64,000 nt of DNA from Entomortierella parvispora E1425 (lineage: Eukaryota; Fungi; Mortierellomycota): assembly GCA_020891255.1 (NCBI GenBank), contig BQFW01000014.1, positions 1,798,001-1,862,000 on the forward strand, in the 5' to 3' direction. Below, piece after piece: positions 22,801 through 43,900 of this stretch. How positions within the stretch are numbered: the stretch's first letter is position 1; every line of letters starts with the position of its first letter. A program made the position numbers and the translations under genes. The notes under the pieces are model-generated. The model was not told the DNA's origin. It made no database searches and was given only the letters and a program-made list of their open reading frames with translations.

Positions 22801-24575
22801 AGGGTCCGTTTCTTCTAGCTCTTCGGCAGCGGTGGCGCGTCATCAGGGAACTCGGATATACTACGAGGGCAACTCGTTGATTAAAGGGATGTATGTGAAC
22901 AGTCCACACATTTTGGTCCGCTTCGAGGTACCACCAGGGCAAAACGAGTACACTATCGTGCTCTCTCAGCATGTCAAGACGAGGGATCTGCATTTCACTC
23001 TACGAGCATACGCAGTCTGTGAGTTTGAACTACGGGAAATTCCAAACCAGTATCCTATCGAGAGAAAGGTATGAGGCGTGGGTAGTGAGCTCTAATGATG
23101 TCAATGTGCCAAGCTAATAATATCGTTTTTTTTTGTGCTCTGCACTGTAGATCGAGGATAGCTGGACAGAAGAAACAGCAGGAGGCAGCAGTTACAATGC
23201 AGGATTTTTGAACAACCCCCAGTATCGGCTGGTCGTTCCTGTGTTGCCTGCGCCCCAAACAACAACTTCCGTCCTTTTCATGCTAGAGTCTCCCAAGGAC
23301 TTTGCTGCTCATGTTCAGTTGGTCAATTCACAAGGAAAACGCGTTTCCTGGTAAGTCAGAGCCAAATTGCGGCTGATGATGGAGTCTACAAAACCATATC
23401 CTAACGTTTTTCTACTTTTTGTTGTAGCGTATGGACCAAAGATATCATTGCTCAATCAGGAGAGTACCGCCATGGGTTCTGCTACTGCGAGACGAACGAC
23501 CTTCGACGTAAGCACCCAAGATAGCATCAGACTTTTGCTTTGTGCACAATAGCCTATGTACTGACTTTCATCCCTTTTTTACAATTCTATAGCTGGCCAG
23601 TACACCGTGGTTGTCTCCACATTCGAGCCGAACCAGATCGGAAAATACAAACTTACGCTCCAATCGCACATTGATCTGCCGCTGACTCCAATCCCTGTTG
23701 AAGGAGCAGTAAGTTACTTCGGTATCAAATGCTTGCTTTGGACACTTGACAGGTTTACTGACAATTTTTTTTGACTGGTATTCAATAGGGCATGTTTAAA
23801 AAGATATTGAAGGGCGAATGGGTACAGGGCGTCAGTGCTATGGGTTGGCATCATCACCAAAGTCTGAGCTATGCCAAGAACCCACACTTCTTGGTGCCTA
23901 TCACAGAGATGACAACCTTTATGTAAGTCTAATTTTCCAGTTGGGTAATGGTGTGGACCGAAGCATGTTGCGCCTATTAACTATACGATTTTCTTTGAAC
24001 ACAGGGTGCGACTTCAAACACCCGACATGAACCCCATGCCCAAAATCAATATCACCGTTTTTGAGCGTCTGGACGAAGGGGTGCTTGGACGAGAAGTAAG
24101 TTCCTCGGGACCATACACATCCGTGCCTCAAGGAGTAGCTACCGATTCGATGACCCTCCTTCCGAACCAGTACGGCTATTTGGTGGTAGTCTCAACACTA
24201 GAGCCTGGCATTGCAGGAAAGTTTGTGCTTTATGGCTACAGTGATCGAGTTCTGGAGATTGAAGCTGGAGGAGGTGCCACTACCAGCGTCAACACCTCGA
24301 ATTCCTACCACCGTCGCCACGGATCATCTTCCTCCCACTCTTCACATTCCTCTCCATCCATCCACGGCAATGTCAGTTCCGGAGGTAGCGGGTATTATTC
24401 TACCGATGGCAATGGTGGGGTAGACTCCTCTATGAGATCATTATCTCTTTCTGCAGCATCTTCATTATCTCCATCATCAGCAACATCCCCTACATTTTCA
24501 ACGCGACCCTCTGCCCGGTTCAGAAGGAACATGGGATCGGGCTCAGGTCCGGGGCCACTGTCCCCTGGATATTAG
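19861..24575 (+). CDS. palB: Calpain-7/PalB/Rim13-like cysteine protease (MIT + CysPc + calpain III domains), many exons
   Basis: Catalytic triad contexts [19 protein letters not shown] and VKNPW; [24 protein letters not shown]; NPQY/F repeats of calpain III domains; N-terminal MIT-like helices. Confidence 0.9.
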
Positions 24576-25597
24576 ATACGGTGTGACTAGCGCTCCAAAA
24601 AATAAAAATAAAAAAGCGTTCCGCATGGTCCACTGTCAGACACAAACCAACCCCGTCCTCTCTCCCCTGATATGTTTGTCCAGATGGGGACGAACGCTCG
24701 CTTTGTCTACATTGGCTGTGGTATTGAAACTGGGGGTACGTGTGATTGCGGCCCGTTTTTTTTTTTTAGGGAGAGAGAGCCGGCTGCTGTTGTTCGTATT
24801 ACACTCTGAGCAACAATTTATCTGTTCGTGTCACCCACCCTCGACAGGTTCAATTGTCGTGGTGGACCGTGCTCTCAAAGTTGGGTCGTCACGACAAAGA
24901 CAAAAAAGAACACAGGTCAGGTCCAGAATTCTTGATCCAATTATCGCTGCAGCAGAGACTACAGAGATGGCGCCGAATTTTTTTTAATTAGAATGTGAGG
25001 AGCACCCTCTATCCTTCCTCCATATACGGTTCCCGAGCACACTCCTGCAGGTAGATGATGAACGAATGCGCACAGCCGACTGCATACCTTGTTATCTCCC
25101 TCTCTCCCTCCCCGTCTCGTAGGCAAGCAATGAGGACTACAAAGGAGCAGTAAACTTGCTTTTCTCTGCCTTGACCCGAAGAACAGAACTAAAAATCATT
25201 CTACTGCTCCCGTCTGGGGATCCAGGCCTAAATTTACAAAACCAACAAACATCCCTTGGATGGGTGGCCGGGTCAGGAGGTGTTTGTCCGCTCCGCCTTA
25301 CAATGAAAAAGGGACATTGCAGGAACGCCCCGTTCTTCCATTTTACTTCCTCTCTTTTTCTTTGTCACTCTTTCTTTCTTTTTCTCCACTGCCTTTTTTT
25401 TTCACTCCTTTTGACCCACGCACTCTCAGTCCTCGATCGGGTCCTGACATCCCCTCCTCTCGATTCCTCAAAAAGACAACGGTCTGCCCCTGCAAACAAA
25501 CAATTCTACGCAGTAAACACACATACATATTCCCTTTCTTTTCCCTTCCTCTCTTCCTCTCTTCCTTCATAAAAACACACAAACACACAAATACACC

Positions 25598-26351: not shown

Positions 26352-29300
26352 TTACGACCAATATCTGCTCCTTGTCGCCGAGGGGACCCAGTTGCTCGTC
26401 TGACCACTATCCCATTGCTGCTGGGCCCCGGGTACTTTCTCTTTTTCTCGGCTTAGGTTGTCATAGAAGGTAATCACCTTTTGGTGCACCATCACCTTGC
26501 TTGGATGGAAATTCAGTACTTGAAGACCCTCAAGACATGTGGCTCGCGACATTGCCACGTAGGCTTGACCTAGAATGGTAGGACATATTCACCGGTCATT
26601 TTAGTATCGCAGTCGTTCGCATCAAATAACAGCGTGCGTGATAGAGAGAGATAGAGAGGAAGGAGAAAGATTTACCTTTTTCAAAGACCTTGCCGAGGTC
26701 CACACGGACTTTTGGCAACGTCTGTCCTTGAGCCTTGTGAATACTCAGGGACCAGGCCAGGCAAAGTGGAATCTGTGTCCTCTTTGCAATCACTTCACCA
26801 CCCGGCATCTCCATCGTCCACTCCTCTCGTCCTACTACCATATGCCGTGTCCGCCCTCCCTCCATCACAAACCTGACGCGGGGAAGCAACTCGCCGTGGC
26901 TGTTCAGAGATGGCAAGGCCTGGCCGCTTGGAGTTTTCCGAAAATTGTCGGACCGTTGAGGGGTGAATTCGACCACAATACCAATGCTGCCGTTGACCAA
27001 TCCTCCTTGCCCTCCATGCAGGTTCCTGAGAAGCATCACTTGGGCCCCCACCTTGAGTTCCAGTTTTGTCGGCGCAATGCAATGCTGTTCCAACTTTTCC
27101 TTCTGTGGCCCATAATCCTCAGCCTCAAAGAAAAGACTTTCAGACGTCAATGCATTCAGTTCCGAAGCATTCGCCTCTTCAACTTGTCTGCGGAGAGGGA
27201 ATCTAGTAGCAGGTAGAATATCGTGAGCTCGTGCATCCTGAAGTAGTTTTGTTCTTATATACCCTACATGGTAGTCATCTTTTCGACTTACAGCTCCGTG
27301 GGTTTTAGTCCATCCGTTTCTGGCAAGTCTCGTGTCAAATTGAGAAACTGCTCAATTGTTGGGTGTTGCATCTGTCCGATGCGCGCCTCATTCAACATTC
27401 TTGCAAAAGCTAGAAGCATATTGTTAGGTACGGGTCAGTTGGATAATTTTGTCTTGCCTTTTTTTTTGTCTTGTGCAAGAAATTGTCTTTCAGAAGAGAT
27501 GGCTTACTCGGATCCTTTTGACGAAACACCTGCTCCAGTTGAATGTTAGTATGGATATATGACTTCCAGGACTCGGCTTCGAAACAAAACTGGATCGATC
27601 TCTTTGCAACAGGGGGAAGCTGAAAAAAATCCCCTGTTAGAACGATCTGGAGACCTCCCCAGGCTTCTTCCTCTTCGTTGGGAACTTGTCGGACTTTCCG
27701 TGCAATCGCCTCCAATTTGTCTAGAAGGACAGCGTCAATCATGGACACCTCATCGATGATAAGCACTCTTGTATGTCTCCAGCGCCTTTTAGTTTTCTTA
27801 CTCGAGAGCACCTTTTTAGTCAGCTGCTCCACCGTGTCATTGCCTAACCCAATCCCGGCAAAGGAATGAAGTGTACAGCCCCCAATATTGCACGCTGCGA
27901 TGCCGGTCGAAGCTGTCACTGCCACCTTCTCAGCTCCTATGCTATCCCAGAAATATGTGTCGGGTGGCGTCTGGCGACTGTACTTTTCTCGTAGTCGTAC
28001 AATGAGCTCACGCAGAAGAACAGATTTTCCTGTGCCCGCTGATCCAGTGAAGAAGACACTCTTGTTGTGCGTGACAACCTGGTCAAGCACGTAAAGTTGC
28101 TCCGGTGACAGCGCCAATCCATCGGCGGTTTTAGTTGGATCCGGTGGATCCATCTCAAACTTGATGAAGTCGTCCCCTTCAGTATCGATTTTGTATGAGA
28201 GCGGCAAATCCTCTCTTGAGTGCTGTAAATTGTTCTCAGATTTACATCCCGATGGCGCAACTTCCGCTACCTCCTGGACAACCTCGGACGATGACGAGGA
28301 AGAACCCCAAATCATTCCGCTTGATTTGTCGAGCAAGCTCTGACTCTGAGAAGCCGGACTTTCTAGGCTGGCCTTGCCTCCTTGCTTTGAATGTGCTAGG
28401 CTTTCCTCTAACTTTTGTTTATGAGATGGAGCGAGTCGAGGGTCAATGCTATTTCCTTGCCTTGGCAACGACGGACTCTCCCCTAGGTTCTGTTTCAGAG
28501 ATGGTCCAAGGTTGGAGCTGGCCTCCTTTCCTTGCCTTATCAGCGAAAGAATTTCTTGCAACCTTTGTCCCTGAGAAGGCACAGCTCCAAGGCTGACGTC
28601 GCTCCCTTGTCTTGGTAGTGACGGGCCCTCTCCCAACTTCTGGCTCAGGGAAGGTACGAGTCCAAGGCTAATGTCACTTCTTTGTCTTGACAGTGCCAAA
28701 CCCTCTCCCAACGTTTGACCCTGATTAGGTGCAGGTCCAACGCTAACATCGCTTCCTTGCTTTGACAGTGACGGACTTTCTGTTTGTCTCTGCCTCTCAA
28801 GAGATTCCCGTTGCCTCTGAAATTCTTCCTTTTCTCTCTTAAATTCTTCTTTTTGCCATTCAAGGTCCTTCCTGAGACTCTCAAGGTCTTCCCGCTGCCT
28901 CTCAAATTCTTCCCGGAGCAGTTGTTGGTCTCGCTGTAACTGCTGCAATTGCGAAACGGGCACCAAGAGGCCACAACAGGCTGATGAAGAGCTGGCGACT
29001 GTGCTTTCACTGGTTAGCATGTGGAGTAACCGTTGGTCTCGCTGCAACTGCTGCAGCCGCGAAGCTGACACCGAAAAGCCATCAGAGGTCGATGAAGAGC
29101 TAGCGACTGTGCTCTCATTGGATGGCCTGACCTCCGCGGTTTGCTTAGGCCCTGTTCCTGGGGTCTTGTAGTGGCGTTGAAGGGTATTATTGCGAAGTTG
29201 GGAGTCGGTTCTGTAGACCCCTTCTAATGACTGTATACCAGCCTCTCCGTCATTGCCGTCGCTATCCAGCTCGACCGGGAAGCGCTGTGAACCTTCCCCA

Positions 29301-29977
29301 AACGAGGGACGGGTTGGTTTTTCCTGATCCAATTGCTCCAGATCTGCCTTTCTCTTTCCTAGTAGCCTGGAAGTGCCTTTGATGTAAACGACGATGGTAT
29401 TAGCGTCCTTTGGACCTTGATTCGAGACTTCCACTGGGATATTTTCCAAAAATTCGCCTTCGGCTAAAGCCGTATCCTTCAGCTCCGAGTCTGATGGGTC
29501 ATTTTCATCCAGCTCAGGGTCGTCCAAGTCGCTCTCGGGAATAACGTTTCTGTCGTAAAGATCGGATGGGATATAGTCGCTTAGGTACTCATCGTCGACA
29601 ATACTTTCCAGCAAGGCATCGTCAAAGTTGTCCTGCCAGGAAGGAGTTTGGGAGAGGATCTCATCCTCTTCAAAGTCACTTAGTTGATCCAAATACCCGT
29701 CTTCTGCGGGCATGGCGTTCCACAAGGCGGTGGATGTCATGACTGGTTCTGGAAGGTCTCCTCCAAAGTCGTCATCCGAAAAGACGTCCCTGTCGAGCTG
29801 CTGGCCGTCCAAAGGGTTGTTTGAGGCACCCGCGCCATCCACCTCCCTCTGATGCCCATGCACACTCTCTGCAGAGGTCAGATTTCCGGCACCATTGCTA
29901 GAACTCTTGAGTGTCTGATGCGATTGCTGTTCTTGTTGCTGCTGTTGCCCCTGAGGTTTCGATTGCACGCTGAGCAT
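26352..29977 (-). CDS. PIF1: PIF1-family 5'-3' DNA helicase, copy 1 (4 coding exons)
   Basis: Motifs [77 protein letters not shown] and YVAMSRAT. Exons 29977-27508, 27409-27292, 27202-26676, 26569-26352 splice in frame at GT-AG sites. Confidence 0.93.
28330..28780 (-). repeat. 75-bp (25-aa) coding minisatellite, ~6 units, in the PIF1 copy 1 N-terminus
   Basis: [25 protein letters not shown] / [25 protein letters not shown] / [25 protein letters not shown] and further units. Confidence 0.85.
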
Positions 29978-30356
29978 GGTGGCAGACGACAGCTGCGGAT
30001 GTATTGGTAGTCTTGATGATTGTCACTTTGCTCCTGAATACCGAGACGACGCCTGACCCGGGGTCTCAGAGGGGTATAGGTACGCTTCGAGTTCTCGTCA
30101 CAACTGCTAGATAGAAAGGTGGACATGGTTAGGCCAAACTGCGTTGTCAGGTACCCGATTGTACTTCTAAGGAAAGAAGGGAGGAGCATGCATTCTTCTT
30201 GACATGCTTTCTCATTGTGCCCTGAGTTGACCCCTGCAAGGTCCATTCCAGGTCGAGAGGTCTTTTCGATGCACGGTCTTGGCTTTAATACCTTTGGTAC
30301 GTGGGATGTGGTTCAAGGGTGACAGTCTACAGGACGTGTTTCTATTGACCGTAGGC

Positions 30357-30470
30357 ACGCGTCCTCGGAGTGAAAAGTGGCGAGGGAGCACGGCCGCGAT
30401 GAGATGAAAAAGGAGGGGTGGATGGAAGGGCGGTAGTGATGGCCCTTCTGCAATGGTATTAATCAATTGA
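30357..30470. promoter_or_regulatory. PIF1 copy 1 upstream motifs: ACGCGT (MCB-like) and ATTAATCAATTGA
   Basis: ACGCGT at 30357-30362 and ATTAATCAATTGA at 30458-30470. The 13-mer recurs upstream of copies 2 and 3; ACGCGT recurs in copy 2 and as TCGCGT in copy 3. Confidence 0.45.
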
Positions 30471-30663
30471 GCCTTGACTGCACTGAATGACGGACAGGCA
30501 GAGAGGTATGGCCAATGGCAATGGCAATGGCGCTGGGAAAGGGTGAAGGACAAAAAGGAACGGAGGAAAGAGAGAAAAAGTTGCGCCACCAATGCTCGGG
30601 ACTCTGATTAAAACCCAGCTCCGATTTGTTATGATTTGTGCCGAGGCAATGTGGCTTTGTGCT

Positions 30664-30808
30664 GGGGTTTTTGTAGGGTTGATGTAGGGTTTTATAGGGT
30701 TAAAGTAGGGTTTTGTAGGGTTTTTTAGGGTTTCTGCTGAGAAGATATGGTTTTCTACTGGGGTTTTTGTGGGTTTTTGTGGGGTTTTTTTTGTGGGTTT
30801 TTGAGGAG
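30664..30808 (+). repeat. Degenerate telomere-like (TAGGGTT) G-tract array
   Basis: Seven GGG tracts with ~10-11-bp period at 30664-30730, then four more T-rich/GGG units. Confidence 0.75.
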
Positions 30809-31019
30809 TTCAAAAAACAGAGTGGCGCCTTCCAAGAATAATGACTGACCTCAGTTCATGGTCTTCCTCCCTCAAGGTACATGTTGCATTTCACCGTCTC
30901 CTCCCTCATGGTGCAATGCACATCAACCCCGTGACCAAGGAGCGTTCATTCCCGGACTTTTTTCAAAGTGAAATGGCACGTCTATAGCACCAACAGCGAA
31001 AAGGCATTGTTATTAATTG

Positions 31020-31615
31020 GTCAAACTGTTCAGGCACGCTGCAAAAGTCCTGGATGGTGGCCGAGGGATTATTGAACCTGTAGGTAAGGAGGACCCTGCC
31101 GAAGGACTTTGGGGGCGCCTTTCAGGAAGCACGATGTGGTGGCCTGTTCGAGGGTATGGCGAGACTCGACGGTCACGTCGTGAGGGTACAAGAAGGACAA
31201 GTCCTTGCGAGTGCGCACTTTGATATCGAACAACATATTGCACACCTGGTCGATAAAGCCGGCAGACTGCGGACGGCTTTGGCAAAGTCATCCCAGTAGG
31301 CGTCATCTGAGAAAGCATTACCTTCCCACCACAGCATGGCATCTCCGGTGAGGAACATTGGCTGCATGCAGAGTGCACTCGTTGTCGGGGATGCTTCGGT
31401 TGGGGGAAGCGGAAGGTGGGGGATGAAAAGAGGCTAGGAACAAGGGACTGGTGGGCAAGGGCCTGGTTGGTGGTCAGAGGTTGGAAAAGGGTTGTCAGGG
31501 GAAGTCATGGAGAGGCTGTGATGGGGTGTCATTGGTGTCGGAGGCGTTAGTAAGGACAGGCGGGGTCAAGGGTCAGGATCTAGGGTCAGAGGTCAGGGGA
31601 CCGAGGGTCCTTGCA
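31020..31615 (-). mobile_element. Degenerate Ty3/gypsy gag (Retrotrans_gag-like) remnant, copy A
   Basis: Frameshifted fragments MFLTGDAMLWWEG...YWDDFAKA, GFIDQVCNMLFDI and FLKGAPKVLRQ resemble capsid-region gag motifs. No pol seen. Confidence 0.7.
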
Positions 31616-31678
31616 ATAGTAAAGTGGAGACAAGAAGTGATGTTTATTCTAGTGCTCGATACTGGGATGATTCGTGGC

Positions 31679-32176
31679 CTACAGTGGTCTATCATACCCA
31701 TAGTCATATTCTTCACAATCCTCTGGCAGTTTTTTAGCTATTTCGCATCTATCGGAGCGACTATCTTCGGCACAAAGGTCGCGGACGTTGGTACACATGA
31801 TCCCGCAAGCATCCTCAGATTTCTTACACAGCTCTAGGAGGTCGCTTATAGGAGCAGCCTTGGCACACTCACGGGCTGCAGCGCGACATGATACAGGTTG
31901 GTTAGGTCCGCAAGCACGGAGATAAGCATCACAGTTTTTAGCATTGAGCTTCTGTTGTTCTGCAGCGGTGAACGGTCTGCAGCAATAGCAACCAACAGTG
32001 TGGCCAGGCACCGTGTCGTATGATTGCTCCCATCCGCTAGGGCAAGTCGCGAATGCCCCCTCGCAATGTTTGCAGCATCGGTTAGCTGAAGTGAAGCAGC
32101 CGGGGACCTGGGCCGCAACACACTGGATGACGACGAGAATCACGCAGGTGATGGTGAAAATATAGCTTGCTTTCAT
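31679..32176 (-). CDS. Small secreted cysteine-rich protein SSP-A (165 aa; 18 Cys in the mature part), family unknown to me
   Basis: 22-aa signal peptide ending CVAA/Q. TATATAAA at 32556-32549, a 5'-UTR intron 32281-32178 (GTAAGG...CAG) and AATAAA ~30 nt after the stop. All of these are conserved in the paralogue. Confidence 0.88.
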   Translation of the reverse strand: MKASYIFTITCVILVVIQCVAAQVPGCFTSANRCCKHCEGAFATCPSGWEQSYDTVPGHTVGCYCCRPFTAAEQQKLNAKNCDAYLRACGPNQPVSCRAAARECAKAAPISDLLELCKKSEDACGIMCTNVRDLCAEDSRSDRCEIAKKLPEDCEEYDYGYDRPL

Positions 32177-32644
32177 TCTGTTGATAATAAATAGCTTCTA
32201 GAATGGAGAGCAGAAAGAGTAGTTAAGGGTAGTACTATTATTCCTCAATGGTCACCATGACTACTCTAGATGCAGCCTTACTTGAAGTGACCCAAGATGT
32301 GGTTGGTTGAGAAAGAAGTTACGACGTTCTTGATAGCGTCCGTGGTGCTCTTGCCGCGGTTCTGTGAGGGAGACGTTCGTTTGACAGCTTCTGCGACGGT
32401 TCTTGTGATGATACCGGGCAATGGTCCTTCTAGTGGCTGTTGGGAGTGCTGGTAGTGTTGTTGGGAGTGCTGGTAGTGTTGTTGTGAGTAGTGCGTTGGA
32501 GTGAGATCAGATGTGTGTTCGTGCAGTATGACAAGTACGCGTGCCTTCTTTATATACTCAAGGAGAGTCAGAATGGGGATGATTTGTCATTTGGGTGTGG
32601 AGTAAGAATACAAAACAGCAAAGACATCTCTGTAACGGAAAACG

Positions 32645-32790
32645 GAGGCAGGGAAGAGTGAGAGCAGGGAAGAGTGAGGGCAGGGAAGAGTGAGGGCAGG
32701 GAAGAGTGAGGGCAGGGAATATTTAGGGCAAGGGCAGGGAAGATCTGGGGCAAGGGAAGGGAAAAGAAAGGGGAGCGAAAAGGAAGGGCA
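32645..32790 (+). repeat. G-rich 16-bp minisatellite (GGGCAGGGAAGAGTGA)n and variants; G-quadruplex motif
   Basis: About 4 near-perfect units followed by GGGcaaGGGcaGGGaagatctGGGGcaaGGGaaGGG. Confidence 0.85.
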
Positions 32791-33656
32791 GGGAAACATA
32801 AAGGGTAAGGAAAAGAAAAAAAAGAAAGGGCGGCAACGTAGTGGCGGCGGGGAAAGCAGGGGCAGGAAAAGTGGAGACAATACGAAATTGAGGGTGTCTC
32901 AAAGGGGGGAGTTGGAGAACAGGGTTGGTTAAACAGGACAACAATAATAAGCAGGTGCAGCAAGCACCGGGGTAACCATAAGGACAAGGAGATAGGAAAA
33001 GGAAAGAGATGGAAATAGTCATCAGTTACAATAAACATCCACACTTTTGAACACGCGCATTCACAGAAGGGAGAAAAAGGTCTTTACGTGTATGCCATCA
33101 CATGGGTTCATTCCTAGTCATGTCATTGGAGAGGAGCTGAACAATATGGTGCTCAACTGGCTAACCGACTTGCTGTTGATATGCTGGTCGGAATGCAGAG
33201 GTTTTGTCGGAAAGGGCAATGGTAGCCAGTGCGAAATCATCGAACAAAAAAGATACAAGTTGTAAGTCATTTTGGTGGCGCTCATTCCACACCGCGTGGC
33301 GTGCGCACGGTGCACACGCGACTGGACTGTGTCCTGCGGATGCATACGTCCGTCCATGGAAAGAGCATCCTCATGCCATGATTCACTACGACATCACGAG
33401 CAGCTGTATACCAATTCGTACCCCAAACCTACTCGCCATTCCAGAGCTGCTGCAGGTAAAGTCGATTTTTCATTCGGAAATGTCTATTATAAGGGAAAAA
33501 AAGACAGACAAAACTGACTCGTAGACTAAAAGACGATAAGAAGATGAATGAAAAATGAATGATGTATTGTACGATGATTATGAAATGATTGAAAAGAGAA
33601 GGGGGAATACACAGGGACGGTAAGGTTTGCGCCCTGTCAGGATTGTCAGATTATGA

Positions 33657-36600
33657 TCATGATCGACGGCTGCTGAAGGTTGCAAACGCCTGGTCACCAT
33701 TAGCCTGCGATTGGGTCGTGAGAGCTCGCTCCTTTTCTCGGCGTAGGTTCTCGTAGAAGGTAACCACCTTTGGGTGGACCATCACCTTGTATGGACTGAA
33801 ATTCAGAACTTGAAGACCTTCAAGGTTTGTAGCTCGAGACAGTGCTACGTAGGCTTGCCCTAGATTGGCACAAGGAGAGAATTCATAAACTATTTAGTTA
33901 CTGTCAAGTCCAATCAACATATCAATCTCCAGGGAAGGTCGTTGATAGAGTAGGCAGCCTATCCAGAGGAAAAACTTACCTTTTTCAAAGACTTTGGTCA
34001 GATCAACACGGACTTTCGGTAACGTCTGCCCTTGAGCCTTATGAATGCTCAGTGACCATGCCAGGCAGAGCGGAATTTGTATCCTCCTGGCGACGACCTT
34101 TCCATCTGGCAGCTCCATGGACCATTCCTCGCGCCCCACTATCATGTGTTGCTCTTCTCCTCCCTCCAACACAAACTTGACACGGGGAAGCATCTCGTCT
34201 GGTTTGTTCAGCGATGGCAAGCGCTTACCGTTCGAGCCCCTCCGAACATTATCGGCCTCCATGCGGGTAAAGGAGACCACGATACCGATACTACCGTTGA
34301 CCAGTCCCCCTTTTCCTCCACTTTGGTTCCTGAGGAGCATCACCTGAGCCCCTACTTTGATCTCTAGCTTTGTTGGCGCAATGCACTGCTGTTCCAACTT
34401 GTCCTTTTGCTTCCCACTGTCCTTGGCTTTGAAGAAAAAACTTTCTGAAGTCAATGCAAGCAGTTCTGCAGCATTCGCTTCATCAACTTGTTTGCGAAGA
34501 GGAAATCTAATAAAACAAACAAGAAAGCCGTCAGTGCATGGCTCACAAACGGTTTGTTTCCATATAGTAATGTGCAATGGCCATTCTTTCGACTTACAGC
34601 TCCGTAGGCTTCAGTCCGTCCGCTTCTGGCAAGGGTCGCGTCAAATTTTGGAACTGTTCAATTGTCGAGTTTCGCATTTCTCCGACGCGCACTTCATTCA
34701 GCATGCTCGCAAAGGCTGTGAAAAATGTCAGGTTAAAATTGGCTGACAATCCCCTTGTTTTTTGAAAACTCGCTAGAAAAAAAAAGGTAACTTACTGTGA
34801 TCCTTTTGTCGAAATACCTGCTCCAGTTGAATAGTGGTATGGATGGTTGACTTCCAGGAATCGGCCTCGAAACAAAACCGAGCCGTTCCATTCTTGTCAA
34901 CGGGAGGAAGCTGGAAAAAGTCCCCTGTTAGAACGATTTGGAGTCCTCCCCAAATCTTTTCCACTTGATCAGGCTTTGTTCGGATCTTCCGTGCGATCGT
35001 CTCCAATTTGTCCAGAAGGACAGCGTCAATCATGGATACCTCATCCACGATGAGAACACATGCCTTTCTCCAGCGTTCTGCAGTTTTACTAAAGCGCACC
35101 TTTTCGATCAACTCTTCCACCTTTTCGTTCCCTAGTCCTATCCCGGCAAAGGAATGAAGTGTGCAGCCTCCAATGTTGCATGCCGCAATGCCTGTTGAGG
35201 CAGTCACCGCCACCCTTTCTACGGATTTTGCATTCGAGTATTCTGGCTCAGGCGGTACCCAATGAATGTACTTTTGCCGTAATCGCACAATGAGTTCACG
35301 CAGAAGGACCGACTTTCCTGTACCCGCTGATCCAGTGAAGAAGAGACTCTTGTTGTGCGTGACGACCTGGTCTAGCACAAAAAGTTGGTCCGATGATAGC
35401 GTCAGTCCATCGGCGGTTTTGGTGGGATCTGGTGGGTTTATCTCTGGCTTAATGGTGTCGCTCTCTTCAGCCTCATTTTCGTAAGGGGAGGACGAATGTT
35501 CGCTAGCGTGTGGTGAACTATACTCAGATTTACATCCTGATGGCGTAACTTCCGCCGCCTCCTGGGCGACCTCGGACGATGACGACGCAGAGCCCCAAAT
35601 CATTCCTCTCGATTTGTCGAGTAGGCTCTGGCTCTGAGAAAGCGCACTTTCAACGATGGTGCTGCATCCTTGCCTTGACTGCGACGGACTCTTTCCTAAC
35701 TTTTGTTGCGGAGATGGTCCAAGGTTGGAGCTGACGTCGCTTCCTTGCCTTGCCAGCGACCGATTTTCCTGCAACCTCTGTTCCTGAGAAGGCACAGCTC
35801 CAAGGCTGATGTCGCTCCCTTGTCTAGGTAGTGACGGGCCCTCTCCCAACTTCTGGCTCAGGGAAGGTACGAGTCCAAGGTTAATGTCTCTTCTTTGTCT
35901 TGACAGTGCCAAACCCTCTCCCAACGTTTGACCCTGATTAGGTGCAGGTCCAACGCTAACATCGCTTCCTTGCTTTGACAGTGACGGACTTTCTGTTTGT
36001 CTCTGCCTCTCAAGAGATTCCCGTTGCCTCTGAAATTCTTCCTTTTCTCTCTTAAATTCTTCTTTTTGCCATTCAAGGTCCTTCCTGAGACTCTCAAGGT
36101 CTTCCCGCTGCCTCTCAAATTCTTCCCGGAGCAGTTGTTGGTCTCGCTGCAATTGCTGCAATTGCGAAGCGGACACCAAGAGGCCACAACAGGCTGATGA
36201 AGAGCTGGCGACTGTGTTTTCGCTGGTTAGCATGTGGAGTATTCGTTGGTCTCGCTGCAACTGCTGCAACTGCGAAGCTGACACCGAAAAGCCATCAGAG
36301 GTCGATGAAGAGCTAGCGACTGTGCTCTCATTGGATGGCCTGACCTCCGCGGTTTGCTTAGGCCCTGTTCCTGGGGTCTTGTAGTGGCGTTGAAAGGTAT
36401 TGTTGCGACGTTGAGGGGCTGTTCTGTAGACCCCTTCTAAGGGTTGTATACCAGCCTCTCCATCATTGCCATCGCTATCCAGCTCGACCGGGAAGCGCTG
36501 TGAACCTTCCCCAAACGAGGGACGGGTTGGTTTTTCCTGATCCAATTGTTCCAGATTTGCCTTTCTCTTTCCTAGTAGCCTGGAAGTGCCTTTGGCGTAG

Positions 36601-37190
36601 ACGATGATGGAATTAGCGTTCTTTGGACCTTGATTCGAGACTTCCACGGGGACATTTTCCAAAAATTCGCCTTCAGCTAAAGCTGTATCCTTCAACTCCG
36701 AGTCTGATGGGTCATTTTCATCCAGCTCAGGGTCATCCAAGTCGCTCTCGGGAATAACGTTTCTGTCGTAAAGCTCGGATGGGATATCGTCGCTTAGGTA
36801 CTCTTCGTCGACAATACTTTCCAGCAAGGTGTCGTCAAAGTTGTCCTGCCAGGAAGGAGTTTGGGAGAGGATCTCATCCTCTTCAAAGTCACTTAGTTGA
36901 TCCAAATACCCGTCTTCTGCGGGCATGGCGTTCCACAAGGCGGTGGATGTCATGACTGGTTCTGGAAGGTCGCCTCCAAAGTCGTCATCCGAAAAGACGT
37001 CCCTGTCGAGCTGCTGGCCGTCCAAAGGGTTGTTTGAGGCACCCGCGCCATCCACCTCCCTCTGATGCCCATGCACACTCTCTGCAGAGGTCAGATTTCC
37101 GGCACCATTGCTAGAACTCTTGAGTGTCTGATGCGATTGCTGTTCTTGTTGCTGCTGTTGCCCCTGTGGCCTCGATTGCACGCTGAGCAT
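33657..37190 (-). CDS. PIF1: PIF1-family DNA helicase, copy 2 (4 coding exons)
   Basis: Same motif set and same three intron positions as copy 1; [10 protein letters not shown]; C-terminus ...FSSRRS then TGA at 33659-33657. Confidence 0.92.
35610..35995 (-). repeat. 75-bp (25-aa) coding minisatellite, ~5 units, in PIF1 copy 2
   Basis: Same xSRQGSxxSLGxxPSxxQxLxE unit as copy 1, one unit fewer. Confidence 0.82.
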
Positions 37191-37861
37191 GGTGGCAGAC
37201 GACAGCTGTGAATGTATTGGTAGTCTTGATGATTGTCACTTTGCTCCTGAATACCGAGACGACGCCTGACCCGGGGTCTCAGAGGGGTATAGGTACGCTT
37301 CGGGTTCTCGTCACAACTGCTAGATAGAAAGGTGGACATGGTTAGGCCAAACTGCGTTGTCAGGTACCCGATTGTACTTCTAAGGAAAGAAGGGAGGAGC
37401 ATGCATTCTTCTTGACATGCTTTCTCATTGTGCCCTGAGTTGACCCCTGCAAGGTCCATTCCAGGTCGAGAGGTCTTTTCGATGCATAGTCATGGCTTTA
37501 ATACCTTTGGTACGTGGGATGTGGTTCAAGGGTGACAGTCTGCAGGACGTGTTTCTGTTAATCGTGGGCACGCGTCCACGGAATGAAATGTGGCGAGGGT
37601 GCACGGCAGAGATGAGAGATGAAAAAGGAGGGGTGGATGGAAGCGCGTGGTAATGGCCCTTCTGCAATGGTATTAATCAATTGAGCCTTGACTGTACTGA
37701 ATGATGGACAGGCAGACAGAGTGGCCAATGGCAATGGCACTGGCACTGGGAAAGGGTGAAGAGGAAAGAGAAAAAAAGGTTGCGCCACCAATGGTCGGGA
37801 CTCTGATTAAAACCCAGATCCGATTGTTATGATTTGTGCCGAGGCAATGTGGCCTTGTGCT

Positions 37862-37962
37862 GGGGTTTTTGTGGGTTGATATAGGGTGTTGCAGGGTTAT
37901 TTAGGGTTTCTGCTGAGAAGATATGGTTTTCTACTGGGGTTTTTTATGGTTTTTTGAGGGGT
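37862..37962 (+). repeat. Telomere-like G-tract array, shorter copy
   Basis: GGGGtttttgtGGGttgatataGGGtgttgcaGGGttatttaGGG, homologous to 30664-30808. Confidence 0.7.
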
Positions 37963-37984
37963 TCAAAAAACAGAGTGGCTCCTT

Positions 37985-38394
37985 GCGAGTGCGCACAATG
38001 TAGTCCGACATCGTGGAGGTCACGATATCGAACAACATACCGCACACCTTGTCGATAAAGCCGGCAGGCTGTGGAAGACTTTGACAAAGTCATCCCAGTG
38101 GGCGTCATCCGAGAGAGCGTTGCCTTCCCACAACAGCGTGGCATCCCCGGTGAGGAACATGGCTGCATGCAGAGTGCGCTCGTTGTCGGGATGCTCCGGT
38201 TGGGGGAAGCGAAAGATGGTGGATGAAAAGAGGCTAGGAGCAAGTTGCTGGTGGGCAAGGGCCTGGTTGGCGATCAGAGGTCGGAGATGGGTTGTGTCAA
38301 TGGGGTCAGGGGGCGTTGGTGAGGACAGGTGGGGCCAAGGGTCAGCATCTAGGGTCAGAGGTCAGGGGATCGAGGGTCCTTTGCTACCATGCAA
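37985..38394 (-). mobile_element. Degenerate Ty3/gypsy gag remnant, copy B, with putative LTR end (TTGCA) and PBS (TGGTAGC)
   Basis: PDNERTLHAAMFLTGDATLLWEG...HWDDFVK and GFIDKVCGMLFDIVTSTMSDYIVRTRK. On the minus strand TATTGCA|TGGTAGC lies at 38396-38383. Confidence 0.72.
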
Positions 38395-38460
38395 TATGAG
38401 TACTGGGGACTAAGTGAGACTAACTTTATTCTAGTGCTCGATACTAAGATGAATTGTGGA

Positions 38461-38964
38461 CTAAATACCTAGAGTTCCAAAATCAGTGAGATCTGGACGA
38501 GTACATGGCTCAGGCAGATTTTTGGCTATTTCGCATCGATCAGAGCGACTATCTTCCTTGCAAAAGTTGCGGACGTTGGTACACATGATTTTGCAATATC
38601 TCTCAGATTTCTCGCACAGCTTTAGGAGGTCGCTTCTAGGAGCAGTCTTGGCACACGTGTATGCTGCAAGGTTACAGGATACAGGCTGGTTAGGACCGCA
38701 AGCACTAAGATAAGCACCACAGTTTTTAGCATCGAGCTGCTGTTGTTCTGCAGCGGTGAAGGGTCTGCAGCAATAGCAAACTGGAGGATGGCCATCCACC
38801 TCCTCATGTGACTGAACCCATCCACCAGGGCAAGTCCCGAATGCCCCTTCGCAATATTTGCAGCATTGTTCCTCTGAAGTGAAGCAGCCGGGGACCTGGG
38901 CCGCAACACACTGGATGACGACGAGAATCAGGGACGTGATGGTGAAAATATGGCTTGCTTTCAT
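38461..38964 (-). CDS. Small secreted cysteine-rich protein SSP-B (167 aa; 18 Cys), paralogue of SSP-A
   Basis: All 18 mature Cys align with SSP-A. TATATAAA at 39292-39285 and 5'-UTR intron 39065-38966. Confidence 0.88.
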   Translation of the reverse strand: MKASHIFTITSLILVVIQCVAAQVPGCFTSEEQCCKYCEGAFGTCPGGWVQSHEEVDGHPPVCYCCRPFTAAEQQQLDAKNCGAYLSACGPNQPVSCNLAAYTCAKTAPRSDLLKLCEKSERYCKIMCTNVRNFCKEDSRSDRCEIAKNLPEPCTRPDLTDFGTLGI

Positions 38965-39379
38965 TCTGTTGATAATAGCTTCTAGAATAGAGAACAGAAA
39001 GAACAGTTAAGAGCAGTACTATTATTCCTTAATGGTCACCATGACTACTCTAGATGCAGCCTTACTTGAAGTGACCCAAGATGTGGTTGGATGAGGAAGA
39101 GATTACAGTCTGAAAATCTTCTCGAATTCGTTCTCGTGACGTTCTTGATAGCGTCCGTGGTTTTGTTTGACAGCGTCTGTGCGGCTCTTACGATGGTACC
39201 TGGTAATGGTCTTTCTAGTGGTTGTTGGAAGTGTTGGGAGTGTTGCTGTGAGGAGTTTAGTGTGGCAGGTACGCGTGCCTTTTCTTTATATACTCAAGGA
39301 GAGTCAGAGTGGGGATGACTTGTCATTTGGGTTTGGAGCAAGAATACGAAACAAAGAGATATCTCTATAACGGAACAAC

Positions 39380-39460
39380 GGGGGCAGGGAAGAGTGGGGG
39401 TAGGGAAGATCTAGGACAAGGGCAGGGAAGATCTAGGACAAGGGCAGGGAAGATCAAGGC
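39380..39460 (+). repeat. G-rich ~21-bp minisatellite (AAGGGCAGGGAAGATCTAGGAC-type)
   Basis: Homologous position to 32645-32790, but a different unit has been amplified. Confidence 0.75.
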
Positions 39461-40237
39461 AAAGGAAGGGAAAAGAAAGGGGAGCGAAAAGAGGAGGCAG
39501 AGAAACAGAAAGGGCAGGGAAAAGGAAGGACATAGTAGGGGCGTGGAAAGCAAGGGCAAGGAAAAGGAGGGACAACACCAGTGCGAGACACAAATAGAAA
39601 TCTAGGGCGAGTTGACAGCAAGCCTGACAAATAAAGAACGAGATTGGCTAAAAGGGTAACAAACAAAGAGTCGCGAGGAAGCACCAATACGGAGGAAGGG
39701 GGCAGCCATAAGGACAAGGAGATAGGAAATAAACAGAACATCCGACTTGGAACTGTTGGTTGTTGCTCACAGAGGGGAGTGGGGAAAAAGGTCTTTCGCT
39801 GAGCAAATGCCGCCATATGAGCTCATTCCTGGTCATGTCCATGGAGAAGAGCAGAACAATGGGTGGCGTGCGCACGGTGCACAATCGACTGGACTGTGCC
39901 CTGTGGACGTATCCGTCCATCCACCCATGGAAAGAGCACCCCCCCCCCCCATGCCTTGATTCACCACGACTTCACGAGCAACTGTACACCAACTCGTCCC
40001 TCAAATCCTGCTGCAGGTATCGTCCTGATTTTCGTTCGGAGAAAAAAAAAATTAAAGCGACTCAGAAAGAAGGAAAAAAAGACAGACCTGACTGACTCGT
40101 AGACAAAAGGACGATAGGAAGATGAATGAAAAATGAATGATGTATTGTACAATGATTACGAAATGATATGAAAAGAGAGAGGGGGGAATACACAGGGACG
40201 GTGGTGTTTGCGCCCTGTCAGGGATGTCAGATTATGA

Positions 40238-43200
40238 TCACGATCGACGGCTGCTGCTGGCTGCAGACGCCTGGTCACCATTAGCCTGCGATTGGGACGC
40301 GAGAGCTCGCTCCTTTTCTCGGCATAGGTTCTCGTAAAAGGTAACCACCTTTGGATGCACCATCACTTTTTGTGGATGGAAGTTGAGGACTTGAAGACCC
40401 TCCAGACTGGTGGCTCGCGACAGTGCCACATAGGCTTGTCCTAAAATGACACATGAGAATACATCATATACATGTCAGTTCCAAGTCGAAGTAAACACCA
40501 TCTCGTGTCTTTGCAGGGTTCTTATCAAGGTGGACCATTCTTTGTGTATACGTGAGAAGGGAAGGAGGTCGGTATTTACCTTTTTCAAAGACCTTGGCTA
40601 GATCCACACGGACCTTTGTCAATGTTTGGCCTTGGGCCTTGTGGATACTCAGGGACCAGGCCAGGCAGAGTGGGATCTGTACCCTCCGGGCGACCACTTC
40701 ACCGTCCGGCAACTCCATAGACCATTCTTCTCGTCCTACAACCATCTCGCTAGAGCGCCCTCCCTCCAACATGAACCTGATGCGGGGAAGTAACTCGCCA
40801 TAGCTGTTTAGCGATGGCAAGGGCTTATCATCCGAACCTAGCCGCACATTATCGGCCGGTCTGCGGGTGTATTCGACCACAATACCGATGCTGCCATTGA
40901 CCAGCCCTCCGATGCCTCCATTTTGGTTCCTGAGCAGCATCACTTGAGCCCCCACCTTGAGCTCCAGTTTTGTCGGCGCAACGCACTGCTGTTCCAACTT
41001 TTCCTTTTGTGGGCCACTATCCCTGGCCACAAAGAAAAGACTTTCAGAAGTCAATGCACGAAGCTCCGCACCATTGGCCTCTTCAACCTGTCTGCGAAGA
41101 GGAAATCTAATAAAAGTAGAAGACATACGTCAGCACTCGTTCGCACCACGGTACTGAGCAAAAGTCAAAGACTGACTTGACGACGCCCGTGTCTTTCGAC
41201 TTACAGATCTGTAGGTTTTAGTCCGTCCGCTTCTGGCAAGGGTCGCGTCAAAATTTGAAATCGTTCAATCGTCGAGTGTTGCATCTGGCCAATGCGCACC
41301 TCATTCAGCATGTCCGCGAAAGCTATAGTCATATAATTAAAAATTGGATGAGAATCACTCTGTTTTGCAAAAAAAAAAAAAAAAAAAAAAAGGCGAAAAG
41401 TCATCGGAAAGAAGGCAACCTACTCTGGTCTTTTTGTCGAAAGACCTGTTCTAGTTGGATGGTGACATGAATGGACGACTTCCAAGATGCAGCTTCGAAA
41501 CAAAATCGAGCCTTCCCGCTCTTGTCCACGGGAGGAAGCTGAAAAAAATCCCCTGTTAAAACGACTTGGAGACCTCCCCAAGCTTCCATGGGCCTCTTCC
41601 GGACAGACCGAGCAATTGCCTCCAATTTGTCCAAAAGGACAGCGTCGACCATGGACACCTCATCTACGATTAGGACACAAGCCTTTCGCCAACGGCCCAC
41701 GGTCTTCCTGCTCGAGTACACCTTTCTGATCAGCACGTCTTCCTGTTCGTTGCCCAATCCAATCCCGGCAAAAGAATGAAGGGTGCAGCCTCCAATGTTG
41801 CATGCAGCAATGCCAGTCGAAGCTGTCACCGCGACCTTTTCTGCTGCTGTCGAATCCCAGTAATTTCTACCAGGTGGTGCCCAACGGCTATACTTCTGTC
41901 GTAGTCGTACAATAAGTTCACGAAGAAGGACAGACTTTCCTGTGCCCGCTGATCCAGTAAAGAAAACGCTCCTGTTGTGCGTGACGACCTGATCCAATAC
42001 GAAAAGCTGGTCTGGTGATAACGTCAGTCCCTCAGCGGTCTTTGTTGGATCTGGTGGTGTCATCCTTGGCCTGAGAGGGTCGTCTTCTTCATCTTCAACT
42101 TCGTATGGGGGTGGTGGATCCTCGTCAGAGTACCGTGAGCTAGCGTCCGATGTATATCCTAATGGCGCGTTTTGTGGAGCTATTTCAGGCGATAGCGAAC
42201 CAGTACCCCAAATCATTCCGCCAGATTGGTCGGGCAAGTCCTGGCTCTGGGAAGGCGTGCGTCCAAGACTGATTTCACTCCCTTGCCTGGACATTGGCTG
42301 ACTCATCGTTGACTCTGGTCTCGTAGAGTTTTCTTTTCTTTGTTGTCGGTATCGATATAGACGTTCAATATTGGTCAAGCGGTCTTGAGAGGTTGATGAC
42401 GAGCTGGCGGCCGCACTTTCACCGCTGGATGGTACCTCTATAACTTGTTGAAGCTCCGTTTTTGAGGTGCTATTGTGAGACGGTGGGGCGCTTTCGTGGA
42501 TTTCTTTAAATGCCAGTAGATCAATATCTTCGCCATAGTCATCGCTGTCGAGCTCGACCGGGAAACGCTGTGAGCCCTCTCCGAAAGAAGGATGTACAGG
42601 CTTTTGCCGATGCAATGGCTCTGGCTCTGCTTTCCTCTTTCCAAGCACTACACTGGATGGCCCAGGAGCAGTATTGTCGTCGGCGTCAATGACAATAACG
42701 TCCTTTTGGTTCTGATCCGTGACTTTCGTCGGGGTGTCTTCCAAAAACTCGTCATCGGCGAAGGCTGCTTCAATGAGCTCGACGACAGATGGATCTTCAT
42801 CGAGCTCAATGCCAAAGTCACCTGTGGGAGCAGTGCTGCTGTCATGGACTTGGGACGACGTGATCTCGTCGCTTAGATATTCTTCGTCGGCAATGCTTTC
42901 TAACAAGGCATCGTCAAAGTTGTCCTGAAGGTCCTTCGAATCTGATGTTTGGGAGGCGATGTCATCCTCTCCAAAGTCGCTCAGGTGATCCATGTAGTCG
43001 TCTTCAGCAGGTAGTGCGTTCCAGAGAGTGGTGGATGTCAGGACTGAGTCTGGAAGATCGTCTCCAAAGCCGTCGTCCGAATAAAGATCGCTATCAAGAT
43101 GCTCCTTGGCATCCAAGAAGGTATCTGAATCGCCGTCGTCGTCATCCTCCTCCTCCTCCTCCTGGCGTTCTTGCTCGATTGCTACAGTCTCCACATTTTC

Positions 43201-43553
43201 GGCATCAAGGCTTGAACTCCCGGATGACTGCTGCTCCTGCGCCTGCTGCTGGTTCAAGTGAGCGCTAAGCATAGGCGGAAGACCACAGCCCTCAATGTAC
43301 TGGTATGTCTCGCCGTTGATCACCACGTCCTTGAACACGGAACTGGTGCTTTCACGGTCGGTTCCAGACACGCCTGGAGTTTCTGGCACTGTTATGTTGG
43401 TGACAGAACAGGAGGGGCATGGTTAGTTTCTTGTCAATATGCTTTCAAAGGAAAGGAAAGGAAACATAGTTTCTCATTCTCTCTCATTATACCCGGGGCT
43501 GATCCTTGTGAGGTCCATTCCTGGGTCGAAGTGTCTTTTCGATTCGACGCCAT
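40238..43553 (-). CDS. PIF1: PIF1-family DNA helicase, copy 3 (5 coding exons including an upstream exon)
   Basis: All helicase motifs intact. Short exon 1 (43553-43493, [20 protein letters not shown]) splices in frame through a GT donor, CTAAC branch site and CAG acceptor into the large exon at ~43389. Confidence 0.92.
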
Positions 43554-43796
43554 GACATTAGTACCTTTGTCAATTTCACAGTGGACAGGGAATGTGGTCC
43601 AAGGATGGCAGTTTTGTGGTGAGTTCTTGTTGAGGACGCTGGCGTGGGCACGCAGAGGTCCGAGGGTGTGGACGAGAAATCGCGTCCTCGGAGTGGTGTG
43701 GCAAGGGTGCACTGAGGAGATGGGCGACGAAGTGGGGACGGGGAATGGAGTGGTAGCAGCCTCTTGCAGGAGCATTAATCAATTGATCCTTGGCTG

Positions 43797-43900
43797 GACT
43801 GACTGACTGACTGACTGATTGAATGAATGATTGACTGACGGACAAGGACAGGGTAAAGGGAACAAAGGGAACAGAGGGAACAGAAGGGAACAAAGGAAGG
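43797..43900 (+). repeat. (GACT)n microsatellite followed by GGGAACA(A/G)A repeats (canonical G4 motif)
   Basis: gactgactgact... then GGGtaaaGGGaacaaaGGGaacagaGGGaacagaaGGG. Confidence 0.75.

Follow-up and report, generated by a model that had tools for sequence, protein, structure and literature searches.

Do helicase genes that alternate with genes for small, apparently secreted proteins form a functional unit, or have they been brought together by the ordinary dynamics of tandem repeats? The question is raised by three Pif1-family helicase genes, PIF1-1, PIF1-2 and PIF1-3, which all lie on the minus strand within 26.4-43.8 kb of a 64,000-nucleotide stretch of the genome of the fungus Entomortierella parvispora E1425 (contig 14:1798001-1862000; hereafter the window, in whose coordinates positions are given) and which are interleaved with two copies of a gene for a small Cys-rich protein, termed SSP. 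A first-pass annotation, made from the DNA sequence alone, proposed that the two gene types constitute a co-amplified cassette under conflict or defense-type selection. Our results argue instead that the array is probably an old tandem triplication, within the Entomortierella lineage, of a second Mortierellaceae lineage of cellular Pif1, with SSP carried as a passenger of recombination between the helicase genes; functional coupling of PIF1 and SSP, or conflict selection, is not supported. A literature search returned nothing on Pif1 arrays in Mortierellaceae.

Structure and intactness of the helicase genes

A direct-repeat search of window positions 24-46 kb recovered three-copy repeat families with spacings of 7288-7306 and 6581-6628 bp and found no inverted repeats. 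The stop-to-stop distances of the PIF1 genes, 7305 and 6581 bp, agree with the approximately 7.3 and 6.6 kb of the first-pass annotation, and the repeat search, Pfam matches and gene models likewise bear out its description of three intact, co-oriented genes in tandem. In plus-strand coordinates the elements follow one another as PIF1-3, telomere-like tract, gag relic, SSP-B, PIF1-2, telomere-like tract, gag relic, SSP-A and PIF1-1 (Table 1); gag and SSP had previously been placed in the swapped order, and both telomere-like tracts had been overlooked.

The three long open reading frames (ORFs) match the Pfam PIF1 family (PF05970) with E ~1e-40 and 137-139 bits (cut-off 25.9), and the Pif1 2B domain (PF21530) is present in three downstream ORFs at 41-48 bits (cut-off 23.9). 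Each of the three exon junctions has exactly one in-frame GT-AG solution per copy, which gives intact products, and regular expressions locate motifs I, Ia, II, the Pif1 signature, III, IV, V and VI in all three spliced products; the earlier statement that every copy keeps all motifs of the superfamily 1B (SF1B) helicases and the same three introns therefore holds. PIF1-3 and PIF1-2 match in length the public proteins P0001, which is 100% identical over the searched segment, and P0005. For PIF1-1 our product has 898 aa, starting from an in-exon ATG at 43272, and the public model, P0002, has 957 aa, starting at 43553 with an additional first exon (43553-43494) that is set off by a fourth intron. 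The public annotation already calls all three genes PIF1.

Two public sequencing runs of the source sample contain the region, one consisting of genomic unitigs (X1) and the other of transcript-like contigs (X2); the comparison with both covered window positions 30000-35900 and used contigs and unitigs only. Run X2 is recorded as 'DNA?' yet behaves as RNA, in that its contigs show exact intron-sized skips, and it is probably the RNA sequencing (RNA-seq) library of the genome paper. Because its contigs, at depths of 10-13, skip precisely the three introns predicted for PIF1-2 (33859-33978, 34507-34597 and 34716-34795; 120, 91 and 80 nt, with CT..AC ends), this gene is transcribed and spliced as modelled. 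Given the complete motifs, the purifying selection described below, and the transcription and correct splicing of copy 2, the three copies most likely all encode 5'-3' SF1B DNA helicases that are still active.

The assembly comprises 38.9 Mb in 20 contigs and was made from Nanopore reads at 409x with Illumina polishing, an RNA-seq library being described in the same paper (PMC8759367). Assemblies classically go wrong at tandem repeats, but that a single PIF1 gene has here been mis-assembled into three is scarcely credible, since the copies are 10-40% divergent along most of their length, which speaks against collapse, copy 2 has distinct spliced transcripts, and the Nanopore depth is high. Short-read unitigs of X1 also fit each copy compared, tiling 30000-35856 except for ~32116-32276, where no unitig is listed, with 0-3 differences and at ~75x single-copy depth, a depth that rises where units 2 and 3 are near-identical.

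The array lies ~400 kb from the end of contig 14, between ordinary genes, i.e. a calpain gene on the left and CDS1 and an epimerase gene on the right. Homology among the three units stops at ~43811; in comparisons of the units, nothing resembling the spacer was found upstream of PIF1-1, and no homology of the flanks was found outside the shared promoter. The interval between the calpain gene and PIF1-3 contains three ORFs of 134-189 aa (24006-25572, plus strand), none with a Pfam match, and an Rfam scan of 25-45 kb gave no match.

Placement within the Pif1 family

The best other PF05970 match in the genome is on contig 10; its closest relative is Mortierella alpina P0013 (91% coverage), and it is the canonical Pif1 orthologue. 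In a maximum-likelihood tree, the array genes form a 100/100 clade with P0003 and P0004 (environmental or Logan proteins), nested in a clade of Mortierellaceae (99/98) to which the canonical group (100/99) also belongs, although the topology is in part driven by N-terminal columns affected by gene conversion and by the slow rate of PIF1-1. Ascomycete and basidiomycete Pif1/Pfh1 proteins fall outside the Mortierellaceae clade, and Helitron-type copies sit on long outgroup branches. When only the helicase core is used, the three copies form a polytomy with P0003 and P0004, and monophyly of the array is not rejected (approximately unbiased (AU) test, p 0.4). Since the canonical orthologue sits on another contig, the array is a second, lineage-specific lineage of cellular Pif1; since it falls inside a Mortierellaceae-only clade, its duplication is independent of the yeast Pif1/Rrm3 split. 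The comparisons with canonical Pif1/Pfh1 and Helitron helicases that had been proposed at first pass thus place the array with the former.

Genome-wide, helicases of the array type occur at this locus only; other PF05970 matches include those on contigs 10, 5, 1 and 7. Those on contigs 1 and 7 are additional, divergent paralogues: the contig 1 gene (L002 3469-6679; contig 1:1607468-1610678) encodes a proline-rich N-terminus of 580 aa, its helicase region being interrupted by a frame break or an intron, and the contig 7 gene (L003; contig 7:1688400-1690100) falls, as a divergent sequence, in the cellular Pif1 clade.

Pif1-like helicases power Helitrons, a genuine Helitron RepHel ORF lies at the end of contig 5 and each spacer of the array contains a relic of a transposable element (TE), so it might be asked whether the helicases are those of a Helitron or of some other large transposon and whether the array arose by transposition. 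This is very improbable. Pfam searches detected no Rep/Helitron_like_N domain in any array copy, including the 440-645-aa N-termini, whereas the contig 5 control ORF has one; the three copies are confined to one locus with housekeeping flanks, they carry spliceosomal introns, no inverted repeats were found, and in the tree they fall among the cellular Pif1/Pfh1 proteins of fungi, at a long distance from the Helitron-type copies. The contig 5 ORF itself (L004 4577-8128, ~2.4 kb from the contig end) is intact, encodes 1183 aa with Helitron_like_N and PIF1 domains, and adjoins a 28S rRNA 3' fragment (contig 5:1905061-1905668). In the subtelomeric stretch contig 11:1-130000 (L005-L007), several 28S rRNA 3' fragments are interleaved with weak, partly broken PIF1-like ORFs, which may represent a decaying array of helicase-bearing elements.

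Rates, N-termini and the identity mosaic

Pairwise Nei-Gojobori (NG86) estimates give dS values of 0.82-0.91 and dN/dS values of 0.14-0.23 among the three helicase cores, and dS values of 1.06-1.13 between the cores and L017, the nearest outside orthologue. As judged from these rates, the helicase cores are old and under purifying selection, and on synonymous distance the triplication of the core, or its last homogenization, is later than the split from the L017 species. The dN to L017 is 0.096 for PIF1-1 and 0.144-0.174 for the other two copies, which indicates that PIF1-1 is the conservative, slowest-evolving copy and that PIF1-2 and PIF1-3 evolve faster.

The N-termini preceding Walker A, of 440-645 aa, are acidic and Ser/Gln-rich. 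A short acidic motif (Table 1) is 85-94% identical among the copies, against 61-75% for the neighboring sequence; it is common to the three copies and to the outside orthologue P0004, and a motif search showed it to be missing from canonical Pif1. PIF1-3 (28372-29129) and PIF1-2 (35660-36342) contain internal 75-nt and 108-nt tandem repeats, encoding 25-aa and 36-aa Ser/Gln/Gly-rich units, together with a coiled-coil insertion, and both the repeats and the insertion are absent from PIF1-1 and the outside orthologue. An SQ/TQ cluster domain, a target of checkpoint kinases, was considered for these N-termini and dropped, because the counts are the same as in canonical Pif1.

Between copy 1 and copies 2 or 3, the N-termini have dS values of 1.2-1.3 with dN/dS about 0.3; between copies 2 and 3, dS is only 0.154, compared with 0.83 for the core, with a dN/dS of 0.38. 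Across all pairs, N-terminal dN/dS is 0.29-0.38. The low N-terminal dS reflects a tract, apparently of young exchange or conversion (Table 1), that covers the N-terminal 550 aa of PIF1, including the 75-nt and 108-nt repeats, the promoter and the telomere-like tract. Outside it, sliding windows over units 3 and 2 show 70-79% identity in the helicase core and 83-89% in the spacers. For units 2 and 1, the last exon and 3' flank are 87-92% identical and the core about 75%.

These data bear on whether the copies have been kept by subfunctionalization, with distinct jobs (e.g. at the nuclear replication fork, at telomeres or rDNA, or in mitochondria) set by the disordered N-terminus, in a manner comparable to yeast Pif1 and Rrm3, and not merely for redundancy or dosage. 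The long purifying selection on three cores (dS about 0.85), the asymmetric rates with one conservative copy, the conserved lineage-specific acidic motif, and the strong differences between the N-termini of copy 1 and copies 2 and 3, including the coiled coil and the 36-aa repeat insertion, would all fit such a division, but the near-identical N-termini and promoters of copies 2 and 3, the product of recent conversion, argue against distinct roles for those two. Subfunctionalization is thus possible rather than probable; it is compatible with, and not opposed to, an old triplication with SSP as a passenger.

The small Cys-rich protein genes

SSP is present in only two copies in the 38.9-Mb genome, both in the array. 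Each encodes 18 Cys residues after a hydrophobic N-terminus, the putative signal peptide being assigned from visual inspection and a predicted N-terminal helix. Its relatives comprise one close homolog, a 166-aa hypothetical protein of Linnemannia elongata, and about ten distant ones; in a ten-member alignment of the family the SSP cysteines are kept, and 10 of the 12 invariant columns are Cys. No family was returned by a Pfam search, no usable match by an Atlas search, and no match in the PDB at E<=0.001 by an AlphaFold model (pLDDT 69). SSP-B appears to be weakly transcribed, in that a low-depth X2 contig lies over 31784-31935 and others over its leader (32467-32632 and 32706-32886), SSP-B fragments having depths of ~4; low-depth contigs also cover the gag relic. 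The leader of SSP-B contains 16-nt CT-rich repeats at 32652-32824 (family D5).

For SSP pairs, dS is about 0.31 and dN/dS 0.52-0.69, in a set of three to four sequences. That this dN/dS is above that of the helicase cores, that the PIF1 N-termini diverge fast, that both gene types were duplicated together and that both are transcribed at some level could be taken to favor a functional cassette of PIF1 and SSP, co-amplified and diversified by conflict or defense-type selection. We regard this as quite improbable. Every pairwise dN/dS is below 1, and both the cysteines and the helicase motifs are conserved; the co-duplication is accounted for by an exchange tract with both ends in PIF1 homology; the history of the SSP segment differs from that of the helicases; and the products are predicted to belong to different compartments, the one being secreted and disulfide-rich and the other nuclear or mitochondrial and acting on DNA. 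Linkage of the two genes is, moreover, not conserved: at the L. elongata SSP locus (L008), the only one to offer genomic context for an SSP orthologue, there is no PIF1 within 10 kb on either side, and none was seen on two short contigs with SSP orthologues (L009 and L018). Of the cassette originally proposed, therefore, the physical co-duplication of SSP with parts of PIF1 stands, and the functional coupling with conflict selection does not. The same annotation held that passive hitch-hiking would be implied if the genes were unlinked elsewhere and the SSP genes silent; we find no PIF1 near the L. elongata SSP gene, but weak transcript contigs for SSP-B.

The resemblance of SSP between genera is unusually high. 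Between E. parvispora and L. elongata, four-fold degenerate sites of the coding sequence are 84-89% identical (n 36-38), ~0.7 kb upstream of the gene aligns at 77%, and SSP plus leader DNA is 77-85% identical across window positions 31722-32849 and 38473-39597, L008 9197-10489 and, from a third source, L018 4-1193. As a calibrator we used canonical Pif1, comparing the contig 10 gene with P0010, whose 90% cluster includes a protein named from L. elongata; the proteins are 74% identical, but the four-fold sites are saturated, at 22.9% identity (n 109). Because 84-89% contrasts with 22.9%, the ~1.3-kb SSP segment would have a far more recent ancestor than the genomes. This suggests horizontal movement of the segment between genera as the simplest explanation, extreme constraint at the nucleotide level being the alternative.

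The surroundings of the L. elongata SSP gene are poor in genes, and a 28S rRNA 3' fragment lies 1.9 kb away. That fragment (L008 7450-8075; 456 bits to LSU_rRNA_eukarya) is mid-chromosomal and just upstream of SSP, and an inverted 67-nt piece of it lies near the gene at L008 8819-8885; dispersed 28S 3' fragments are common in E. parvispora too. An origin of the SSP leader in an rDNA spacer was considered and dropped, the matches to loci beside 28S fragments being weak and of low complexity (68-73%).

The telomere-like tracts and the retrotransposon relics

The telomere-like tract of unit 3, located 690-830 bp upstream of the PIF1-3 ATG, contains 6 AGGGTT in 150 nt, the expectation being 0.06 and the maximum among 200 shuffles 3. 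In a genome search the internal tracts match the T4-7AGGG arrays borne by the contig ends, which are in forward orientation at right ends and in reverse orientation at left ends; the remaining listed matches, with the small contigs C16-C18 left out, are at contig ends or within ~20 kb of them. Most contigs end in the telomere repeat, and the assembly is therefore close to telomere-to-telomere. The chromosome-end repeat is a T-rich unit of ~10 nt, T4-7AGGG, mostly TTTTTTAGGG (e.g. L011 1340-1500 and L012 1310-1480), and differs from the common fungal TTAGGG.

The gag relics described at first pass are real: they are homologous (BLASTP, E 2e-14; also tblastn) to a dispersed genomic family, of which an intact gag ORF with a Retrotrans_gag/Ty3 capsid domain (PF03732) is found in L014. 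The relics themselves carry stops and frameshifts and are without pol. TE DNA begins 15 nt past the SSP-B stop codon, at the very point to which similarity with the L. elongata SSP locus extends, and the G-strand of the tract points from the PIF1 promoter side toward the retrotransposon, which is truncated within gag.

To judge from their sequence, the junctions of the spacer look like a break-repair patchwork. Such an arrangement would result from the fusion of a critically short telomere with a broken end or from telomerase-assisted repair, both putative origins of the tract; the Pif1 helicase family antagonizes telomerase. On a stronger version of this scenario, the spacer would hold foreign DNA captured at a former or repaired chromosome end, with SSP and its 0.7-kb leader a cassette moving horizontally among Mortierellaceae genera that inserted between Pif1 paralogues, next to a short telomere tract and a broken retrotransposon, and was subsequently amplified by recombination between the Pif1 genes, a history that we consider unlikely.

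Table 1. Positions of the helicase genes, SSP genes and spacer elements of the array (window coordinates)
Feature	Position	Strand	Description
PIF1-3	26352-29977	-	1110 aa; exons 29977-27508, 27409-27292, 27202-26676, 26569-26352 (including stop)
PIF1-2	33657-37190	-	1080 aa; exons 37190-34796, 34715-34598, 34506-33980, 33859-33657
PIF1-1	40238-43553	-	Exon boundaries 41424, 41322-41205, 41106-40580, 40440-40238
Acidic N-terminal motif	29565-29635; 36778-36848; 42857-42927	-	NFD[DE]ALLESI.D.EYLSD; repeat family D16
Young exchange/conversion tract (putative)	28500-30800 versus 35730-37950	-	92-100% identical; repeat families D1, D8
SSP-B	31679-32176	-	165-aa Cys-rich ORF; hydrophobic N-terminal signal-like segment
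SSP-B non-coding leader/promoter	32177-32849	-	77% with Linnemannia elongata (blastn); SSP-A counterpart 38965-39597
SSP-A	38461-38964	-	167 aa; 73-75% identical to SSP-B
Telomere-like tract, unit 3	30665-30800	+	Degenerate; ~12 units, 10-nt period; G-strand toward higher coordinates
Telomere-like tract, unit 2	37860-37950	+	Shorter, more decayed; abuts truncated gag relic; family D15
Ty3-type long terminal repeat (LTR) retrotransposon, 5' fragment	30996-31664	-	gag relic 30996-31358 (aa 5-137), with stops and frameshifts
gag relic, unit 2	37958-38172	-	Equivalent of the 30996-31358 relic

Origin of the array

Any account of the array has to accommodate its observed structure, the intactness and selection regime of its genes, the identity mosaic and the lack of conserved PIF1-SSP linkage. 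The order of events that we propose is inferred from the mosaic. The starting state would be an old set of PIF1 repeats, in which the helicase genes, as direct repeats, would drive non-allelic recombination and gene conversion. A later exchange of ~5 kb, running from mid-PIF1 through the spacer to the 3' tail of the next PIF1, would have duplicated the spacer together with SSP, and a still later conversion would have re-homogenized copies 2 and 3 over their N-termini and promoters. The spacer itself would be a patchwork of unrelated DNA, comprising a decayed telomere tract, oriented as though it had formerly capped the PIF1 side, a truncated Ty3-type element, and the ~1.3-kb SSP segment with its own history. 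SSP is regarded as a passenger because it is located between recombining helicase repeats and would have been copied with them; purifying selection on the helicases, an SSP dN/dS below 1 and an exchange tract anchored in PIF1 homology make the case for passive hitch-hiking.

Several points weigh against this account of an old triplication followed by exchange. The three helicase cores are about equidistant and, in the core-only tree, form a polytomy with P0003/P0004 (AU p 0.4), so that the order and date of duplication are not fixed. The core is not split into copy-1-like and copy-3-like parts, as a single unequal crossover predicts, and at least two events, or older spacers, must therefore be assumed. 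The dS of SSP (0.31) is about twice that of the N-termini (0.15), for which one event is insufficient. The expression evidence, moreover, is that of contigs over 30000-35900, i.e. the region of PIF1-2 and SSP-B.

The overall results account for a striking 'helicase plus effector' array by ordinary tandem-repeat dynamics, which spares follow-up work on a supposed defense cassette. They also define a second, Mortierellaceae-specific Pif1 lineage with an acidic N-terminal motif, of which E. parvispora has long kept three copies, and these copies offer a natural setting in which to study the division of labor among Pif1 paralogues outside yeast. Most worth pursuing are the fossil telomere tract and the possibility that the SSP segment was transferred horizontally. 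The SSP segment is the most useful by-product, as a testable candidate for gene transfer from fungus to fungus in early-diverging fungi, because its synonymous positions, and the non-coding ones upstream of it, remain close to unsaturated in a comparison of two genera with saturated housekeeping genes.

Comparison with known systems

Small effector genes that move horizontally between fungi are known, ToxA being an example. SSP resembles such genes in being a small, putatively secreted, Cys-rich gene that, with its flank, is unusually similar between distant species and lies in TE-rich DNA; it differs in that no carrier element was identified for it and in that its hosts are saprotrophic Mortierellaceae, the comparison being of three or four sequences.

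Interstitial telomeric sequences resulting from telomere fusion or from telomerase-assisted repair of double-strand breaks are known in vertebrates and plants. As in those cases, the E. parvispora tract is a short internal block of the species' own repeat that joins unrelated DNA, here a promoter and a truncated retrotransposon. The array's tract was, however, duplicated together with its unit, and its origin is putative. Telomere-linked helicase families include the Y' elements of yeast, tlh1/2 of S. pombe and TLH of Magnaporthe, which encode RecQ-type or other helicases at true chromosome ends. The likeness lies in a helicase gene beside telomere repeats, amplified by recombination between repeats. 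The array differs in its helicase type, SF1B Pif1, and in having a decayed tract of ~135 bp at ~400 kb from the contig end.

With Helitron RepHel proteins the array shares the Pfam PIF1 domain, but it is without Rep/Helitron_like_N, occupies a single locus, contains introns and is placed with cellular Pif1, the real Helitron ORF of this genome, at the end of contig 5, being a distant outgroup to it. A further parallel is with the cellular Pif1 proteins of fungi, i.e. S. cerevisiae Pif1/Rrm3 and S. pombe Pfh1, which have the same SF1B core motifs I-VI, signature motif, 2B domain and variable, disordered N-terminus; the array core is 55-60% identical to ascomycete Pif1/Pfh1, and fungal paralogue pairs have likewise arisen by lineage-specific duplication. 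The array differs in consisting of three tandem copies on top of a canonical orthologue elsewhere and in its very long (440-645 aa), acidic, Ser/Gln-rich N-termini with their own conserved motif, and it is known from sequence and transcript contigs. It is, in sum, a tandemly expanded cellular helicase paralogue, homogenized by non-allelic recombination and accompanied by a passenger gene, whose helicase genes were already annotated as PIF1.

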